A stretch of 21,152 nucleotides of DNA from assembly GCA_964035545.1 (NCBI GenBank), contig CAXIUT010000173.1, forward strand, positions 1 through 21,152, given 5' to 3'. This DNA comes from Bugula neritina. Lineage: Eukaryota; Animalia; Bryozoa. Below the pieces are notes generated by a model. The model was not told the origin of the DNA. It saw nothing but the letters and a program-made list of their open reading frames with translations, and did not search any database. Made by a program: the position numbers and the translations under genes. Below, one piece after another: positions 10,829-21,056 of this stretch (its first letter is position 1; the number at the start of each line of letters is the position of its first letter).

Positions 10829-10905
10829 GGGGTTGGGGTTGGGGTTGGGGTTGGGGTTGGGGTTGGGGTTGGGGTTGGGGTTGGGGTTGGGGTTGGGGTT
10901 GGGTT
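10829..10905. repeat. Internal telomeric tract (GGGGTT)12 + GGGTT
   Basis: Same orientation as a right-end telomere, 84 nt after the MORN stop; no CCCCAA tract follows it. Confidence 0.99.
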
Positions 10906-11862
10906 ATCTGCTTTTTTAGTTGATTTTTATTGGTTTTAATGTTATTATGGCTTCTAATGAAGGCTTGCTTGTAGTTTTGAGGCTATAAGGGCATAAAATA
11001 GTTTATTGAACTTATCGTTTGTATTCTTTTTATTTTATTAGACTAATTGCTTTAATTATGCAGATTTATTTGATTTCAACTTTTTCAAATGTTTATTTAC
11101 CTCCTGAAATTAACTCAATCTCATCATATTATCCTCTTAGCTATTTCTGAAAGGTCTATGAAGATTTTTATCGTCCTAGCTATCATTTCTATGAGGTGAT
11201 TAATATATTTACTGCATTACTACTAAAGGTTGTTATTTTCTCAACTATCTAAGACTCATAAGTTCATCTTTGAAGACCTATACTGAAGATGTTTGTGGAT
11301 GAATGCGATAGAGGGGATACTTGTGGTTGAATCAACTTGTTTTCTTTTGATTTAGTGTAAGAGATCAGGTCTATTTTTAACAAACTTTTAATGTTAGAAC
11401 TATATTTAATTCTTATCTCCTCTTACTTTATGGAAATTATACATGTTTAGCTGTATTAGTGAGTATTACTTGTCTGACGAAAGAGGACATATTAGAATGT
11501 TTAAAATATTTGGGTAAAACTATTTATTAAAAAGCTCTTAAATTATGTATTTTGAAGGAACATATTGGTTGTATTCTTCGATGCAGAAGCTATCTCTATC
11601 CGTACCATTCTTGTCCTTGGTTCATTTGGTATAGATGTTGGTCTTGATTTTCACCCCAACTGACTATGCTGTCAAATTGTTTTTATTGCAAAATTGAATA
11701 GGTTTTTTGGATGAAGTTGTTGACTGATGGAATATTGGTAGATTTTCTTTATTTTTTTGGTTGATTTTAGTGGAGATTGGGAAGGGAGTGGTGCTGAATG
11801 AGTTGGATAGAAGGGATTTAGTTTTATTGTTTGATATTGTCTTTGCGGTCTTATTGTTTCAT
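10906..11862 (-). CDS. HSF: Heat shock transcription factor (HSF DNA-binding domain + HR-A/B-like coil), 3'-truncated at the internal telomere
   Basis: NNFIQKTYSIL...IVSW...SFKIHNLRAFEEIVLPKYFKHSNMSSFVRQ|LNMYNFHKV...FEHEKFVKNRPDLLHEIKRK; later heptads ending NDKFNKLFYALI. One apparent frameshift near 11300. The frame runs without TGA into the telomeric tract. Confidence 0.93.
11451..11469 (-). other. 19-nt intron in HSF DNA-binding domain
   Basis: GTAATACTCACTAATACAG precisely interrupts the invariant SFVRQ-LNMY motif. Confidence 0.95.
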
Positions 11863-11911
11863 GTTATTTATAATTATAGATGATGATGATATTTTGAATA
11901 TAGAGATTGAA

Positions 11912-13719
11912 TCATGGTGCTAGACAGCGTTTGAGTTGATCGATTATTTATTCCATTTAAGGTCTTCTGGTAGGATTTTAATGCCAGCATTTTCTGATTA
12001 GATTTTTTATTTATGGTTTTATTTGTTATGGTAGTTTAGGTCTAAAATTTTACTATGCAAATTTTATAACAACCTATCTGAGTGACAGTTGTCGATATTG
12101 TCTATTTTTGGTGACAATTTCATAGAGAATAATGCCAAAGGAGTAGATATCTGCAGGTTTTTTAGGCTTCAATATGATATTATTTTTATCTTTTAAATGC
12201 TAAATAGCTGTATACATATTTTTATTGGTATATCCTGTTATCAATGATAGATATTTCCTCATCGAATGAAGACCACACCCATTCAGAATGACTCTCTATC
12301 TGTCTGCGAAGGTGTGATTAGGCGAGAGACATCCATGAACTATCTAGTTGTCATGTAGCTATCTGATGGCTTCTGCTAGATCAATACCTAATTTTATGAT
12401 ATCTGATTCTGACTTTAATGAATCTACTTGAGAATCTAGATTGTTTTGATAATATTTTTATACCAAATGGATGATTTATCCTTCGTAGAAATATGATAGT
12501 TTTGAAAGGGATCGCATGTTGATTTGATTCCATAGACTGATCTCATTTTAGATATCTTAGAAGATGTATCTGGAGATTTAGTGTTTTGATATTCTGATGA
12601 TGTATTGTTTGTTTTATATTTATCCTTTCTTGACTACCCAGATTGATTATTATTTTGCTAGATTTATATCTTATAGATTTTTGAAACTTTTCAGTCTGAG
12701 TTCGAGAAGTTCTTATTCGTCTCTTGGGTCGGAGTTGTTGAGGTTCTTATCTAGAAGGGAATTCTATAAATCTTAAGAATAACGAGTAATTATACTTTAT
12801 TTATAGTCTAAGGTGGAAGGCTTGTAATTTAGTGATTGAACTACACTGCTTCTTAAACTATACATCACTGGTAACCCTTCAGTCAGTAAAATCAGTACTA
12901 TTGTTCCAACAAATAGTATAGCTAACACGATCTAGTAGGAAAGATTCCAGCTGCATATAGTTTCTTGGAATGAGCTAGGCACATAGAGAGCGATCAGTAG
13001 TTATAAAGTGATCATGAAAGTGCGGCTAAGCAAGATTATAAGTTGAACTTTATAGACTCTTTTAATGACTTAGTTTAATCTTGTCTAAACGAGAACTCCT
13101 GTCATTTTGAAGTTGAAGTAAAAGAATGTAACTAGGAAAATAATAACTACCAAGAGATTGAGACCAAGGCTGATACCATTCAATACGCTATAGTACAACT
13201 TATCAACGTCCATGATTATGAGAGGAATTATGAGGACGATACTGACTGCTACTTGGATGGTTCTGAGTCCAAGAGAGATGGCTCTTGATTTTTTCTGAAT
13301 TATGGAGACGATACTTGTGAAAATTTTTATTTAAGAGTAGAGAGGCAGAGTTCAAAATAGTGTTAGAGACTGACTAAAAACAATTCTATTACTACTAGAT
13401 CTGCTAGGATCATGCCTGACTTGATGAACATTTCAATATTATCTGTACTTAGATTTTAAAAAGAGTTAGTGAAGCCGACCACTACTTCTATCCCTGTGAT
13501 GCCGCAGAGGATGAGTTTTGTTCCAATGTAGAAGATAATGACGAAATAGTATCTTCTGTTGTAGAGTTCTATAAGTTTTTTTGCTCTTCTGATGACTATA
13601 AGGAGCAAACATATCAGGTAGATGGTGACCATTACTATCGCTAGGAAAAGAATCAGCACTGTTCTGGTATCAAGGGGATCGGCTTTGATGAAATGTTTGA
13701 TTGAAGTGTCACTATTCAT
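11912..13719 (-). CDS. Seven-transmembrane protein fused to a C-terminal TKL-type pseudokinase (~600 aa)
   Basis: Seven hydrophobic segments (last IVLAILFVGTIVLILLTEGLPVMY), linker, then LGIDLAEAIRELHDNEIVHGCLSPNH, VILNGCGL, YTAIE, ADIYSFGIILYEIVT, FRPKLP, LIRKCWHENPTRRP; TGA 11912-11914. One apparent missing base in an A-run near 13320. Confidence 0.85.
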
Positions 13720-13788
13720 TAGGTTAATATGAATGGTATAATATTATTAAAGCTATCAATATAGTTAAATAATAGATATTTAATGATA

Positions 13789-13844
13789 GTTGTATCATTT
13801 TTTGAAGGGACGTCGTTGTATCATTTTTTGAAGGGACGTCGTTG
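13789..13844. repeat. 26-bp exact tandem duplication spanning the chitin synthase stop codon
   Basis: GTTGTATCATTTTTTGAAGGGACGTC at 13789-13814 and 13815-13840, followed by GTTG. Confidence 0.95.
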
Positions 13845-16800
13845 GTTATGTTATTGTTCTTTCGATGACATACTAAGTTATCCTTAGTCTTCTTCTGCTA
13901 GTCTAAGATTGCTTTGACTAGCATTTTTTGAAATATTTATCCCATTTTTCTTCTTTAGGACTTCTTTGTATTTGCTATTATTAATTTGATTTTTTTGTTT
14001 AGCATTTTTTTGGTTTTGTTCTTCTTTAATTTACTACAAATGGTATTACAAAGGAGGTTTTTTTTAGAAGATATTTGCTCTCTTGTTTATAATAGCTGAT
14101 CTCTTTTTTTGTACATTAATTTTCATATAGGATTATTTGAATATTTTTTTAGATTTAGTATGTTGCATAAAGGATGATCCTTTATTTCCATTATTTTTAT
14201 AATTAAGATAGTCATTTGATACGTTTTCAAGAAAAGTTCTTACTTCTAACTGAACTTACTTTTAATATTTTTATATCTTTTAGATAATTCTTTTTTAAGC
14301 TCTGAATTGGGGAACAGGATCTTTGATTGTTACATTTGAGCACCAATATAAAAACATGTAGAGGATAGCTATTAGAATTTTTATAGCAAGAGTACCTCCT
14401 ATGAGTCCTATCATGATTAAGGTCACCATAAAACGAGGTGTGTAGCTTGATCCGAGAGTTAAGAGGACAGCACCAATGACGATGTTCCAAATGACATATT
14501 TACCTACATGGATAAACTTGATTAGTCTCCAAGAACCTTTTAGATCGCTATTTTTTGTTGAAGTGCTATCAAGACCTTTAGTTCCCCATGAAATATCATC
14601 AATTCTACAAAGTGAATAGATGTTGAGTATGCTTAGATAGGTTGGAGTGAAAAATAAGAATGAAAGGGCACCTAAAATAATTTAACAAAGAATATTAGTT
14701 TTTCCAAAAAATAGTAAATAGATTGAAATGGGAACAAGATAAACAGCAATAGAGCCAAGAAGTGCCCATCTCATGATTTAAATTGATTGATTGCCTCCTG
14801 GAACAGAATCAATGTTTGACTAATTTGTAACAAGAACTAGATAACAATAAAATTACATGTTTATTGACCACCTATAAGTCCTCGAACGAGATCTACAGTC
14901 AAAACTATAAAGACAATAAGCATAAATAACCCAAAAAGAGTTGATACAATGTATATGTAGGGTTTAAACTTCGAATTATTGTTGGTTAGATGAAGACTGA
15001 AAAAGATAATAGCTAGCAAAAGCATGACATAAATGAAGTCTATCGTGTAGACAAAGGCATTATAGAATTAGCTATTATTAGGATCAGAAACTACTCCTCC
15101 TAAAGCTTAAACAAGAACATCCTATCGAAATGCTTCCATAGCTATATGAACAGTAAAGAGAAATAGAGACGGTGCAAAGTAAGCCAGAGAGTTCATCAAA
15201 GTTAGGTAAAATATTTGAATATTAAGACCTATTTAACAACCATTTTGACTCTCGTGTTCAGAAAGTTATCTTTTGACCTTTTCAAAAGCAAAATAACTTC
15301 CATTGATCCACCTTTTTCTTTGACCCATCAAGCCATGGACTGTTTTAATAGGATCAACTTAAGCATAGGCATCAGGAAGGAAAGCCATTCCAAAGCCTTT
15401 TTTATGGATGCCCATACAAAGAATACGATCTTCAGCTAGATACACATTTTCATTGTAAAGCATAGCTTCATCAGACTCTGGGTCAATGTTTATACAACAA
15501 CTATTGATAAAGTCAGGAAAGGCAGTTCTAAGAATAGCATTTCTAACACCCATTTAGCTTTTCACTACTTTTCTATTTGCGAGTTTTTGATCTATTGAAG
15601 AAAAATAAGATTTCAATAGTGTATCGTCTTAATCATGATCATATCTTACTATAGCATTCATATTGTATGCTGAAAAAGCTCCAGGTAAGACATGAATGAA
15701 CCCAAAGGCAGCTTAGAAAGGCTTGTCCATTAAGTGAGCAAAGTGATACTAAACTTGTTGAGTTCTTTGAATGTCTGTGAATTTTGAGGTAATATAAGTC
15801 AAAAAGTCGATATCTTAGTCTTTAACTTCTTCTTACTCATGAACTTTTTCTATTTTAAGACTCATGTATCCACAAACACCTCCAACACCATGATTTTTTG
15901 TCATATATTTGTACATTTTAAGAAGAGCAACTCCTTCAGGTTTCAGTCCTACATCTAGTAAAACTGCATATCTGGGCTTTAATTATTTGCAAAAGCCATT
16001 GAAAAACCAGTTATGAGATGATAACTTTCCACTATTTTTGTACTTAACACATAAAAATAGGTTCATGTGAGTTGATTTTTCCAATCTTTAATCATGTTAA
16101 TCATTCAAACATCTTGCTTCAAAACTATTTGGATTTTTATCTAGCCAGGCTACTAATCTTTAGCTTTTTCTGAATTATATTTTCTTTCTGAAAGTAGCCA
16201 AGTAGGAAAGATCTTCTCTTGTATTGACATATTATTGACAATATCTGTATGCTTCTTGAAGTGCCTACATTACTATTGGTCGAGCTCTTCTAATATCAGA
16301 CATATATTCATCTATTAAAGCTTAGCTTTTTAATTTATTAATTTCTTCATCACTCTCGACATACTCTTTCTTTCTCTGCTTTTTTATCTACTCAAGGACA
16401 AAGATCTGCAACTTATGAGGAAGATCTTCGTAACGAGGTTTTTTCTTTTGAAATTATTTGATTTTTCCAAGAAGTTGCTTCTTTTATATGTAATCTGAGT
16501 GAATAGCTTCGAATCTTAAATTTTGACGTTCTATCAGTTAAACTGGATCAAATAAAAGAGCATTTGTATTTTTCATCTATTCTTCGTTGATTTCATCTTC
16601 AGTCATTGTTTTTGCTCTTTGATCCATCTCTTCAACAGTCAAGGAAGGAGGACTAAAGTTTCCTAGGTTGATATTGCAGCTGTGTTAGCATTATTAGAAG
16701 TAATGAACAACTGAATCATCTACTTTTTCGATTCCATCCATCATCACAAAGACTCCTATTTTATCAGGATCAATATTTTCGTAAGCAACTAGATTGGCAA

Positions 16801-17197
16801 TATTTTCTGAGACTCCAGCGAGAGTGTTTTTGAGCATAGCCTTATCTTAACTATACATGCAGATGCAGATGGCTAGTTAGATTCCTTCTCTTTGTTTTAA
16901 GAGAGAAAGAATGTTATCTTGACTATTTTATCTTAGTTCTGATAGAATTGCTCTGTCATGGATCCTCTCTATATTTTTGAGGATTCTTTTATCGCTATTA
17001 ATTGATGTTTTTACGGCTATTTTCAGTCCTGCAGGAAGAGAATCTGATTTAAGTTTAGAGTCTTCATCGAGGATTTCTGTTTGATAGGTTTTTAAAGCGA
17101 TTTCAATCGGCTTCAAGAAACCTCTGTGGAGAAGATCTTCGCTTTTGATCTTCTAAAGAGCCATCTAAACTATTCTGTTTGGATCTTACTCGGGCAT
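13821..17197 (-). CDS. CHS: Chitin synthase (GT2), paralog 1, ~1118 aa, one intron
   Basis: ICMYSED, VMMDG, KYKNSGKLSSHNWFF, LLDVG, GGVCG, QQVEY...DKPFEAAFGFIHVLPGAFSAY, YLAEDRILC, QRKRWING, TM helices, IDDISWGTKG. ATG 17197 to TGA 13821-13823; 3377-20=3357 nt is a multiple of 3. Confidence 0.96.
14837..14856 (-). other. 20-nt intron in CHS paralog 1
   Basis: GTAATTTTATTGTTATCTAG; same position as the intron in paralog 2. Confidence 0.88.
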
Positions 17198-17452
17198 TAT
17201 ATTTTTATACTTTTTAAGACATCTATCAGAAAATTAAGTCTATCGTTCCGCTAGACTTATTTAGGTCAAAATGAACAATAAAAATAGGATTTAGTTGATG
17301 AAGATGATAAATAAGAATGCTTTTTAGAGTTATTTTAGATTTTATTTTTCAATAAAACTAGCAATACATTGAAGTGATTAAATTAAAATAATCAATCTCG
17401 TAAGATAGATTCAAAGAATTAAATTTATTATATTAAATGATGGATAAATGAA

Positions 17453-20400
17453 TCACTTTTAAGATGATCTTTTAACATTTTTGAACTGTTACTTCTTTAA
17501 TTTATCTTGTGATTTTTATTTTGCTTTAAAGACTCCTCCTTCTTATTTCTATTGAATCCCAGGAACAATAGGTGGAAGATATTATCTTTTCGGAAGAGGA
17601 TTGACAAGTGCGTCTGAACTTCTCTCATGCTCACTTAAACCAGAACTATTTTGCATTATTTATTAATGAACAACTTTGTTGTTATTTTTAGTTTATGGTT
17701 TATTGACTTGTTTTTTATTACTTCCAGGTTCTTAAAGGATAGTAGGAAGAACTGTTTTTTTAGGTTTTAGTTTTCCTAATTTATTTATTCCACTTTGAAC
17801 TTTTGACAATTGATTTTGTTTTCTAAATGATTATGCTACATTTTTTTTTGTTCTTGAAGCTTGAATAAATGATCCAACTGCGTTATTGCTCATATACTAA
17901 TTTTTCATATTTTAAAGATGTGTTCTAACTTAGTCCATAATTTATCCCCTATAGCTATCAATAACTGTTCCAATTCTTGAATCAGTTTTAAGAACTACTC
18001 TTTTCTTTTTCAATGAATCACTTTTACACCAATATATCAACATATATATGACTCCAACTATGACCTTAATAGACATAGTAAAACCAATAAGGACAACCAT
18101 AAGAATAGTAACAAAGAATCGAGGCACATAACTAGATCCAAGAGTAAGTAGTGCTGCAGCTATGATGACATTCCAGATGACATATTTAGCAACATGAACA
18201 AATTTTATCAGTTTCCATGAATCTTTAAGATTGGCATTTTTAGTTGATGTGTTATCAAGACCTTTAGTTCCCCAGGAAATATCATCGATTCTGCATAAAG
18301 AGTAAATGTTAAGAATGTTTAAATAGGTGGGACTGTAGAAGAGAAATGAGAAACCTCCAAGAATGACCTAGCAGAGAATATGTGCGTTACCGAAAAGGAT
18401 GAGGTAGAACATGATAGGAACGATGTAGATGAGAATTGATCCTACTAGCATCCATCTCATCATGTTGATAGTTTAAATTCCTCCTGGAATTTATTCAATT
18501 AGAGCTGCATTTTGAATCAAAACTGAATAAAACCATAATTACATGTGTCATTATGAATTAGACCACGGATGACATCGACAGATAAGACAATAAATACGCA
18601 GATCATAAAAAGACCGAAAAGAGTTGATATTCCGTAAATATAGGGTTTGAATTTTTTGTTATTGTTAGTTAGGTGAAGACTGAAGAATACTATTGCCATC
18701 ATTAGCATGACATAGATGAAGTCAATAGTGTAAACAAAGGCATTGTAAAATTCACTACTGTTCGGATCTGACACGACTCCTCCTAATGCTTTAACTAGTA
18801 TATCTGATCGAAATGCTTACATGGCTATGTGAACAGTGAAGAGGAAAAGAGATGGAGCAAAATATGAAAGAGAGTTCATCAAAGTTAAGTAAAATATTTG
18901 AAGATTCAGACCAATCTCACATCCTATCTATTTTTCATGCTCAGAGAGCTATCTTTTGACCTTTTCAAAAGCAAAATAACTTCCATTGATCCACCTTTTT
19001 CTTTGGCCCATCAAACCATGGACTGTTTTAATAGGATCAACTTAAGCATAAGCATCAGGAAGAAAAGCCATTCCAAAACCTTTCTTATGAATACCCATAC
19101 AAAGAATACGATCTTCAGCTAGATACACATTTTCATTGTAAAGCATAGCTTCATCAGACTCTGAGTCGACAGTTATACAACAACTATTTATCATATCAGG
19201 AAAGGCAGTTCTAAGAACAGCATTTCTAACACCCATTTAGCTTTTAACTATTTTTCTATTTGCGAGTTTTTAATCGATCGAAGAAAAATAAGACTTTAAA
19301 AGAGCATCATCTTCTGTCTCGTCATATTTAACTATAGCATTCATATTGTAGGCTGAAAAAGCTCCAGGTAAGACATGAATAAAGCCAAAGGCAGCTTAGA
19401 AAGGCTTGTCCATTAAGTGAGCAAAGTGATACTAAACTTGTTGAGTTCTTTGAATGTCTGTAACTTTCGATGTAAGTCCAGTTAAGAAATCAACTTCATC
19501 ATCTTTAATTTATTCATCTGAAGAAACCTTTTCGATTTTAAGACTCATATATCCACAAACACCACCAATTTAAGGATATTTGACCATATAGTTATACATT
19601 TTAAGAAGAGCTACTCCTTCTGGCTTCAGTCCTACATCTAGTAAAACTGCATATCTGGGTTTTAGTTATTTGCAAAAGCCATTGAAAAACCAGTTATGAG
19701 ATGACAACTTTCCACTGTTTTTGTATTTCACACATAAAAATAGGTTCATTACTGTACTTGGTTCAGATTATTATAACTACTGGTTCAATAATTAATGATC
19801 GCTTTGAATATACTTTTTACTGTCAATTTTTTAATCTTCAATTTGACTTTAGACGATTTGGCTCCAAGAAAAAGGAACTTTCTTCCTGAAGAAAGATAAA
19901 TATGCTAAATCTTATCTACTTGAGATATAGCTTTTACAGAATATTTATGCTTAATTCAAGGCTTTCATGACTATAGGTCTAGTTCTATGTACATCTGAAG
20001 CATATTCTTCAAGAAGAGCTTTTTCAGGAATACTTTTAGCTTCTTAATCTGTTTCTAAATAATCTTTTTTTCTTTGTTGTCTAGCCTAATCAATGAAAAA
20101 TATTTGAAGTTTACTAGGTAAGTCATCATAAAGTGGTCTTCCTTTTTTTAGCTTTTGTATTGTTTTTAGAAGTTATTTCTTTTATTGATAATCTTGATGT
20201 ATTGATTCGAATCTTAATCGATTTCTTTATTAGATTTAAGCAGGATTAAACAAAAAGTTATTAACATTTTTCATTTATTATTAATTGATTTATTCTTCTG
20301 TCATTGTTGTTGCTCTTTTATGCATCTAAGCTACTGTAAGTGAAGGAGCAATATTGCTTCCAAGATTTATATTGCTACTTCTCTAGCACTATTAGAAGTA

Positions 20401-20892
20401 GTGAACGACTGTTTTATCTACTTTTTAAATTCCATCCATCATTACAAAGACACCTATTTCATCAGGATTGATATTTTAAAGTGCTACTAAGTTGGCTATA
20501 TTTTCTGAGACTCCTGCTAAAGTACTTTTAAGCATAGTTTTGTCTTAACTGTACATACAGATACAGATAGCTATTTTTATTCCTTATTTTTGTTTCATGA
20601 GGGTAAGCATATTGTCTTGATTATTTTATTGTAGTTCTTGGTAACTTTATTTTTCATAGATTTATTCAATATCTTTGAGAATTTTTTTTTCACTTTATAG
20701 TGATGACTTGACAGCTATTTTGAGGCCTCCTGGAAGAGAGTCAGGCTTCAGATGGGAATCATCTTTAAGCAATTATGTTTTGTGAGTTTTAAGTGCAATT
20801 TAGATGGGTTTAAGGAAGCCTTTGTGGGTGATATCTTACCCTTTAATGTTTGAACATGCAATCTAAACTAGTTTTTGTGCTTCTCTTTACAT
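17453..20892 (-). CDS. CHS: Chitin synthase (GT2), paralog 2, ~1139 aa, one intron
   Basis: Collinear with paralog 1 (MEREAQKLVEI...GFLKPIEIALKT, CMYSED, VLPGAFSAY, YLAEDRILC, QRKRW, DDISWGTKG). ATG 20892 to TGA 17453-17455; 3440-20=3420 nt is a multiple of 3. Confidence 0.96.
18523..18542 (-). other. 20-nt intron in CHS paralog 2
   Basis: GTAATTATGGTTTTATTCAG; the unspliced frame ends at TGA (the supplied ORF 18517..18774), the spliced frame continues FLIQNAALIEEIPGG. Confidence 0.9.
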
Positions 20893-21056
20893 GATAAAAG
20901 TTTCAAATTAGATATGATTATAAGTATAGCTTTTTTCAATTTGAAATAAACTCATAAAGCTAGACTTATCTATTAAACCACTTATTTCATCAAACTAAAC
21001 TATTATTTATCATCATACGATATTTAAGAATAAATCCATATTTTCAATCAAAGGTA

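Follow-up and report, generated by a model that had tools for sequence, protein, structure and literature searches.

We have found that the minus strand of a small contig deposited with the genome assembly of the bryozoan Bugula neritina carries a real and conserved gene for a putative 7TM-pseudokinase, in which seven hydrophobic helices, a variable linker of ~60 aa and a TKL-like kinase domain with a degenerate active site follow one another in a predicted product of ~595 aa (135 aa from exon 1 and 460 aa from exon 2). The existence of the gene is confirmed by comparison with homologous sequences, and the interpretation offered in an earlier note on this DNA, that of a single-chain receptor-pseudokinase standing in a chitin synthase module, is partly supported. 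Taken one by one, neither the architecture nor the loss of catalytic residues is out of the ordinary; what is new is their combination in a family that is lineage-specific, uniformly dead, strongly constrained and equipped with an orphan 7TM domain.

The window, that is the whole stretch of 21,152 nucleotides that was analysed, is the entire contig C182 of a 216-Mb assembly. This assembly is made up of eight multi-megabase contigs that are read in the standard code and of ~300 small contigs with in-frame TAA and TAG codons, from which it follows that a ciliate is present as a passenger in the animal assembly. The gene belongs to this peritrich ciliate, whose small macronuclear contigs sit within the animal genome assembly.

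One gene, read in the peritrich code

Reading the region on the plus strand or with the bacterial code gave only short ORFs and was rejected, as the gene lies on the minus strand and follows the peritrich code, in which TAA and TAG are Glu and TGA is the stop. At the family columns in which a TAA or TAG codon occurs, the other members have E in 54%, D in 12% and Q in 8%, a tally that favours Glu over the assignment of the two codons to Gln (code 6). The AIE and CWHENP motifs depend on TAG and TAA being read as Glu, and the Glu of the "APE" position, which is the last residue of the activation segment, is a TAG codon (12200-12202). The window is AT-rich, with a GC content of ~31%. Read in this way, the span 11912-13719 that the earlier note had assigned to the gene proved to be exact (Table 1), and all of the motifs it had named were located in the minus-strand frame, with TEGLP at 12883, HGCLS at 12337, NGCG at 12283, DIYSFG at 12151 and CWHENPTRRP at 11989-11960.

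Table 1. Features of the 7TM-pseudokinase gene and of its neighbours in the window
Feature	Position	Strand	Remarks
7TM-pseudokinase gene (putative)	11912-13719	minus	ATG 13719, TGA 11914-11912
Exon 1, 135 aa: short extracellular N-terminus and TM1-TM3 (predicted)	13315..13719	minus	ATG, three hydrophobic segments
Intron, 20 nt, GTATCG..TTCAG, in the TM3-TM4 cytoplasmic loop	13295..13314	minus	resolves the frame change near 13300
TM4-TM7 including ICL3 (FKMTG..IKRVYK); LLTEGLPVMYSLR motif marks the end of TM7	12863..13273	minus	
Juxtamembrane segment and acidic, weakly conserved linker, ~60 aa	12680..12862	minus	majority fraction 0.51
TKL-like pseudokinase domain (predicted), ~255 aa	11915..12679	minus	HMM of active ciliate kinases
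Degenerate catalytic loop HGCLSPNH for HRDLKxxN	12314..12337	minus	Asp to Cys, Asn to His
NGCGLH for xDFG	12266..12283	minus	Asp to Gly in either alignment register
Activation segment SMRKYLSLITGYTNKNMYTAIE	12200..12265	minus	most conserved stretch of the family
TGA stop codon	11912..11914	minus	
Chitin synthase A, upstream neighbour	13821..17197	minus	Chitin_synth_1 (PF01644), EDR and SWGTK motifs
Chitin synthase B, tandem second copy, followed by the right-hand telomere	17453..20955	minus	
HSF-type DNA-binding gene, downstream neighbour	10906..11862	minus	PF00447

The frame changes near 13300, and this calls for an explanation. Together with the finding that no RNA run contains the sequence (the four runs examined are genomic contigs without a spliced joint), it could be taken as a sign of an artefact, be it a pair of separate genes, a pseudogene in decay or a frame that was mis-assembled. 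Among the candidate introns submitted to a local open-frame check, however, a 20-nt GT..AG intron was the shortest removal that joins both frames without a stop, and its position is common to the orthologues L005 (20 nt) and L004 (21 nt, in frame); an intron at this shared position is absent from L009 and L025-27. In the contigs of four public runs that cover 10950-15500 there was no indel inside the gene, which rules out an assembly error as the cause of the frame change. Furthermore, TM4-7, the linker and the kinase-like domain share one uninterrupted exon in the window and in 16 full-length homologues, the TM4-to-kinase ORF being unbroken in all homologues, and dN/dS in the family is 0.02-0.06. 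The artefact reading is therefore close to refuted. The single-chain fusion that had been proposed is supported as one gene at the level of sequence, and a single transcript is suggested by the unbroken exon 2 and by an intron whose position is conserved.

A kinase-like domain without its catalytic residues

The stop-free kinase pieces of the window are at most 41 aa long, and the one that contains DIYSFG (12077-12199, 41 aa) reached 17.9 bits against PF07714 (E=0.002), which is below the cut-off because the piece is short. The GC-richer orthologue L005 offers a stop-free C-lobe of 179 aa (L005:2535-3071), which matched PF07714 with 81.2 bits (cut-off 23.1, E=9.5e-23), and the full kinase-like domain of the window could be aligned to positions 20-276 of a local HMM (E=2.5e-18) that was built from 19 active kinases encoded by this ciliate and that sets the register of the N-lobe. 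The domain belongs to the eukaryotic protein kinase fold (PF07714/PF00069). The best solved relatives of the L005 C-lobe in the PDB were TAK1, KSR, ILK, RIPK1, CTR1 and RAF, all of them of the TKL group, and two of these are classical pseudokinases. Along with the DIYSFG and CW..RP motifs, these relatives indicate that the domain descends from TKL-group kinases.

The earlier note had described the TKL-like kinase as catalytically dead and as having no clear Gly-rich loop, and both observations were borne out in alignments to TAK1 and to the HMM of active ciliate kinases. No glycines are found at the GxGxxG position, the Lys of VAIK is replaced by Arg, the Asp of HRD by Cys, the catalytic Asn by His and the Asp of DFG by Gly; the DFG register falls by alignment on either GCG or GLH within NGCGLH, and the Asp is Gly in both. 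The alphaC Glu is kept, APE reads AIE and the C-lobe is intact. With five catalytic elements replaced, the domain is predicted to be no longer capable of transferring phosphate, and with the Lys and both Asp residues lost in a domain under purifying selection it answers to the definition of a functional pseudokinase, for which the loss of one or more of these three residues is enough.

The loss of the motifs was found to extend to the orthologues. Both catalytic Asp residues are absent in all of the ~17 members with a visible kinase region, and all loci that reach this region have HG[C/S/G/V] for HRD and Gly for the Asp of DFG. It might be argued that the kinase is still active by an unconventional, WNK- or CASK-like mechanism, as it has retained the alphaC Glu and the C-lobe and as a Lys is present at the beta3 position in the sister clade of L008, L021 and L023 and likewise in L016; but five separate catalytic elements have gone together in the window protein and neither catalytic Asp is kept by any family member, and we regard such activity as very improbable. 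On the same grounds of the alphaC Glu and the side clade with the beta3 Lys, the domain may bind a nucleotide without catalysis.

A seven-helix domain without recognisable relatives

Like the kinase motifs, the seven hydrophobic segments noted earlier could be recovered. Kyte-Doolittle analysis of the window protein placed three segments in exon 1 and the other four in exon 2, and family-averaged profiles (of 13 and 16 sequences) yielded the identical seven. The number of K+R per loop is 4.6 / 0.5 / ~3 / 0.2 / 4.9 / 0.7 / 3.1, an alternating positive-inside arrangement, and the outer loops are acidic. This textbook pattern predicts an N-out, C-in topology with the kinase-like domain in the cytoplasm. 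The extracellular parts are short, with ~20, 17, 7 and 16 aa. Conservation peaks at the cytoplasmic face, where ICL3 is the top loop, and in the activation segment, and is lowest in the extracellular loops and the linker, as seen from majority fractions of 0.81 in ICL3, 0.75 in TM3, 0.74 in TM7 and 0.52-0.54 in the extracellular loops. Nearly invariant charges lie within the membrane, namely a Lys in TM2, an Asp and a Glu in TM3, an Arg and a Glu in TM6 and a Glu in TM7.

Because of the in-frame TAA/TAG codons and the intron, no stop-free piece extends across the seven helices, and the searches with the 7TM part were made with such pieces and at a correspondingly limited sensitivity. In Pfam, ten pieces of the window and eight pieces from five orthologues gave nothing significant for the 7TM part, the only matches being to kinases; matches to WLS-like_TM (E=0.0025) and Lit (E=0.022) were below threshold and inconsistent between members, and were discarded. 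Read-through six-frame scans of the assembly with the GPCR families PF05462 (cAMP-receptor, Dicty_CAR), PF10192 (GPR180/TMEM145), PF06814 (GOST/GPR107) and PF00002 (secretin, 7tm_2) gave no match at C182. The same scans did match other loci, in ciliate as well as in host genes, which demonstrates that the method works. Profile searches of the PDB sequences with the TM1-3 and TM4-7 family alignments found no relative, and the best score in a feature search of the ESM Atlas (0.77) was within noise.

A GPR137/TOM1-like identity, which the earlier note had put up for comparison, was not borne out. The THH1/TOM1/TOM3 family PF06454 (GPR137-like) matched one weak host locus in a read-through six-frame scan and none at C182, and the pieces had no match to it in Pfam. 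Proteins of the THH1/TOM1/TOM3 and GPR137 type do have seven helices and short loops like the window protein, and they presumably share with it a Pro that is preceded by an acidic residue where TM7 reaches the cytoplasm, a resemblance that is no more than a lead. As far as the stop-free pieces can tell, the 7TM part appears to be an orphan with no tie to GPCRs or to TOM1/GPR137 at the level of sequence, and it is on account of its topology that we speak of a receptor-like domain.

It is conceivable that the seven helices form a transporter or channel and that the pseudokinase is its cytoplasmic regulatory domain. The charged residues within TM2, TM3, TM6 and TM7, the very short extracellular loops and the failure to match any GPCR family would all agree with this, but no transporter family was matched either, and the repeat of TM1-3 in TM5-7 that is expected for 3+1+3 carriers was not significant (hhalign probability 0.8%, E=0.07), leaving a transporter or channel quite unlikely.

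Conservation of the family and a possible mode of action

When 1.84 billion representative proteins were searched exhaustively with HMMER, the stop-free piece of 87 aa at 13459-13719 found 28 relatives, all of them unannotated fragments of 48-174 aa, since gene calling in the standard code cuts at TAA and TAG. Loci were assembled from the contigs of these fragments and from JGI metagenomes that were scanned with a TM4-5 alignment, and 25 were recovered, with a GC content from 28% to 51%. Among both the representative proteins and the JGI metagenomes, relatives were found on peritrich-code contigs only. Every locus that reaches the kinase region has the same fusion in one open frame, and no paralogues were found in the window's own assembly with the 87-aa and the 69-aa TM pieces. 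In an ML tree the main clade splits into three subclades; L008, L021 and L023 form its sister clade, and L025 is a distant branch.

Of the 460 aligned columns, 69 are invariant, and these include the substituted HG and G.G positions; the H and G of HGCLSPNH are invariant in all members, and the activation segment (KYLSLITGYTNK.MYTA.E) is nearly so across the family. Synonymous sites are saturated between most lineages, and dN/dS was obtained from pairs in which they are not, with values of 0.019 (L021/L023) and 0.055 (L005/L010) for the gene and of 0.023 and 0.038 for the pseudokinase domain in the same two pairs. The pseudokinase is constrained as strongly as the TM domain, and the linker has a pN two to three times as high as the domains on either side. 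Purifying selection of this strength indicates that the dead kinase is functional and is not decaying, and that the dead site, which is family-wide, is ancient and maintained.

A site that is uniformly dead and yet under strong purifying selection argues for a non-catalytic function of the pseudokinase. Action as a scaffold or by allostery, as suggested by the pseudokinase state, is the most likely mechanism and in our view a fairly probable one. In this model the 7TM bundle would anchor the protein in the membrane, and a cue would probably be sensed within the bundle, since the extracellular loops are short and variable. The state of the bundle might then be relayed through the highly conserved cytoplasmic face (ICL3 and the TM7 end) to the pseudokinase, which a flexible linker would join to the helices and which might act as a docking or allosteric partner of an active kinase or of another effector, as do KSR, ILK and HER3. 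Alternatively, the pseudokinase might be a phospho-acceptor by way of its invariant Ser/Thr/Tyr-rich activation segment. Like the window domain, KSR and ILK have a TKL-like fold with a degraded active site, and the L005 C-lobe matched KSR (8bw9_D) with E=7e-11 and ILK with 1.5e-10, a similarity of ~25-30% that covers the C-lobe only. KSR and ILK are soluble multi-domain proteins, whereas the window pseudokinase is fused to a membrane domain, and the comparison would serve, by analogy, as a working model for how a protein of this kind could act without catalysis.

7TM-TKL fusions have been described in ciliates, amoebae, oomycetes and choanoflagellates (PMC10463195, PMC1420674, PMC5784254, PMC12716839). 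The Dictyostelium proteins 7TMK1 and 7TMK2 were the first two 7TM-kinase proteins to be noted (PMC1420674), GPCR-TKLs are the largest GPCR-bigram class of the oomycetes (PMC5784254, PMC6033456), and ciliate GPCR-type transmembrane kinases with TKL-related domains were reported in a cross-kingdom survey (PMC10463195). The ciliate and amoebozoan GPCR-type kinases of that survey and 7TMK1/7TMK2 have, like the window protein, an N-terminal 7TM part and a C-terminal cytoplasmic TKL-like kinase, and those of ciliates share with the window family both their occurrence in this group and a function that is uncharacterised. Going by the published descriptions, the window family is set apart from them by its uniformly dead kinase, and its 7TM part matches no GPCR Pfam family of those used to define GPCR-type transmembrane kinases. 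The oomycete GPCR-TKL bigrams and the acanthoecid choanoflagellate GPCR-TKL/K (PMC12716839) have the same domain architecture, but they are described as kinases and not as obligate pseudokinases, and the window protein comes from another lineage and has no DEP domain; their 7TM domains are probably unrelated to that of the window, and this looks like a convergent architecture. In a 2025 eLife survey it was concluded that 7TM-kinase fusions have had repeated origins, none of them being functionally characterised (PMC12716839). Pseudokinases are predicted to make up ~22% of the kinases of Tetrahymena and Paramecium (bioRxiv 10.1101/168187), and among the papers searched none was found to treat peritrichs and pseudokinases together.

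Gene neighbours and the chitin synthase link

The gene had been reported to start ~100 nt downstream of a co-oriented pair of chitin synthase (CHS) genes and to be followed by an HSF gene, and this arrangement was found as described. The TGA stop of chitin synthase A (13821-13823) and the ATG of the 7TM gene are 101 nt apart, and PF01644 matched at C182:15905-16081 (61.8 bits) and at 19588-19764 (61.1 bits), as well as at 16697-16858 (26.1 bits on the piece 16697-16846). The ATG of the HSF gene is 49 nt past the 7TM-gene stop, and PF00447 matched a 28-aa piece of it (11440-11523) with 26.1 bits (cut-off 22), the rest of the domain being seen in the translation. PF03142 (Chitin_synth_2) matched host loci only, the ciliate enzymes being of the Chitin_synth_1 type.

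The linkage to chitin synthase was found to be conserved in one part of the family and absent from another. A CHS gene stands directly upstream and co-oriented in the window, in L005, L010 and L012 and in the L017-L020 group, that is in five lineages from all three subclades of the main clade, with a gap of 100-180 nt. Other genes and no CHS are found upstream in L014, which is nested in the main clade, in L022 and in L025/26. An HSF gene lies between the 7TM gene and the next gene in the window, L012, the L017 group and L024 only. An unrelated MORN-repeat gene located downstream on the opposite strand is conserved in at least nine loci (L005, L010, L011, L012, L013, L014, L015, L017 and L028) and occurs as well in the window, where it stands beyond a telomere-like tract; more loci have it than have CHS. 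Gene order is the same in the window and in L005 along the whole 9.7-kb L005 contig, which also includes a DnaJ and a WD-like gene, and the third CHS of the same ciliate, on contig C105, has no 7TM-pseudokinase neighbour.

The CHS adjacency is ancestral and long-lived, but no more so than that of neighbouring gene pairs. As the conservation of the MORN gene at least equals that of CHS and as the window and L005 are collinear, the linkage to CHS is best seen as inherited collinearity, a background synteny, and the adjacency alone is no argument for a functional module. The proposed module of sensor, chitin synthesis and stress regulator, for which the absence of CHS from L014, L022 and L025 and the restriction of HSF to some of the loci are unfavourable, is weakened by these results and is speculative.

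It has nevertheless to be considered whether the protein might be dedicated to the adjacent CHS as a membrane regulator or partner, for example by sensing attachment or the state of the membrane at the scopula and controlling the deposition of chitin in the stalk, lorica or cyst, with the pair being kept on one small chromosome and thus at a shared copy number. The close, co-oriented position in all three main-clade subclades, between which synonymous sites are saturated, would be in line with such a partnership, as would the chitin that has been reported from the stalks of sessilids (Jiang et al. 2025, cited in PMC12411067). However, L014 shows that a member of the main clade can have other genes in this place, the more widely conserved MORN gene and the collinearity with L005 remove the need for a special explanation, and the CHS on C105 does without such a neighbour, so that we consider a dedicated partnership rather unlikely. 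Unlikely as well is the joint proposition that the 7TM-pseudokinase is both the membrane sensor and a regulatory subunit of the peritrich CHS machinery for the stalk, lorica or cyst wall and has shared one small chromosome with CHS from the time the main peritrich clade arose. A connection with the deposition of chitin is possible, for which no support was found beyond the inherited gene order. Should the protein prove to be such a sensor and regulatory subunit, a cellular function would be assigned to a 7TM-kinase fusion for the first time. Sessile peritrichs are amenable to culture and the chitin of their stalks can be stained, which makes the CHS hypothesis cheap to test.

Today these results are of modest practical value. 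They provide a clean gene model, define the family and map its synteny in a group of organisms for which most genes in public databases are wrongly called, since TAA and TAG encode Glu. To the known 7TM-kinase fusions the family adds a restriction to peritrich-code contigs, a 7TM domain without recognisable relatives and a kinase that has been dead since the origin of the family. The constraint on this dead kinase, which ranks with the most constrained parts of the protein, suggests that signalling proceeds by binding and not by catalysis.

Source of the DNA and public gene calls

In the Bugula neritina assembly, eight multi-Mb contigs use the standard code, and about 300 others, all of them small, contain TAA and TAG codons in frame. 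This small-contig set, which includes the window (C182), is a peritrich ciliate carried along in the animal genome assembly. DNA near-identical to the gene for the 7TM-pseudokinase, a seven-pass membrane protein fused to a dead TKL-like kinase domain, was also present in runs from three studies, labelled as three different organisms. In public protein collections this family is represented by mistranslated fragments only. In one public gene call (P0001) on a contig carrying a homologue, TAG was read as Gln and a 21-nt in-frame intron was read through.

Chitin synthase and HSF neighbours

The tandem duplication of the chitin synthase gene (CHS) was seen only in the window's species, a single CHS being located upstream of the 7TM-pseudokinase gene in the homologous contigs L010, L012 and L017. 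A third Chitin_synth_1 gene was mapped to another contig of the same assembly.

In the HSF gene, contigs from three independent runs have an extra G after window position 11296. The window assembly has probably lost 1 bp at this position, a deletion that would account for the broken frame in the C-terminal half of the gene. As assembled, the last HSF ORF runs without a TGA up to the telomere-like tract, which may be due to the same indel.

Coordinates of the features
Feature	Location	Strand	Length
Internal (G4T2) tract	window 10829-10905		77 nt
Last HSF ORF, as assembled	window 10906-11331	(-)	
Tandem chitin synthase pair	window 13821-20955		
Third Chitin_synth_1 gene	G000:C105:84738-84899		
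Region noted with public gene call P0001	L004:301-825		
Sister-clade region compared for chromosome ends (L021)	L021:1784-3574		
Sister-clade region compared for chromosome ends (L023)	L023:2178-2198		

Internal telomere-like tract and chromosome ends

The internal (G4T2) tract sits exactly in the tail-to-tail gap between the HSF and MORN genes. Gene order across it (CHS, 7TM-pseudokinase, HSF, tract, MORN, DnaJ and onwards) is collinear with other peritrich contigs, and in L012, L017 and L005 the MORN gene adjoins either the HSF or the 7TM-pseudokinase gene with no telomere repeat between them. Thus, the window's two "minichromosomes" lie side by side elsewhere. When window region 10950-15500 was compared with public runs, contigs from two of them (X1 record 1 and X2 record 9) continued leftwards beyond 10950. 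The tract may mark a site of chromosome breakage that is alternative or confined to one lineage.

In the sister clade, a G4T2 telomere was found about 90 nt past the end of the 7TM-pseudokinase gene in L023, whereas in the near-identical L021 the gene is followed by one for an apparently active kinase that has an HRDLKPAN motif. This difference indicates that chromosome ends differ among close relatives.
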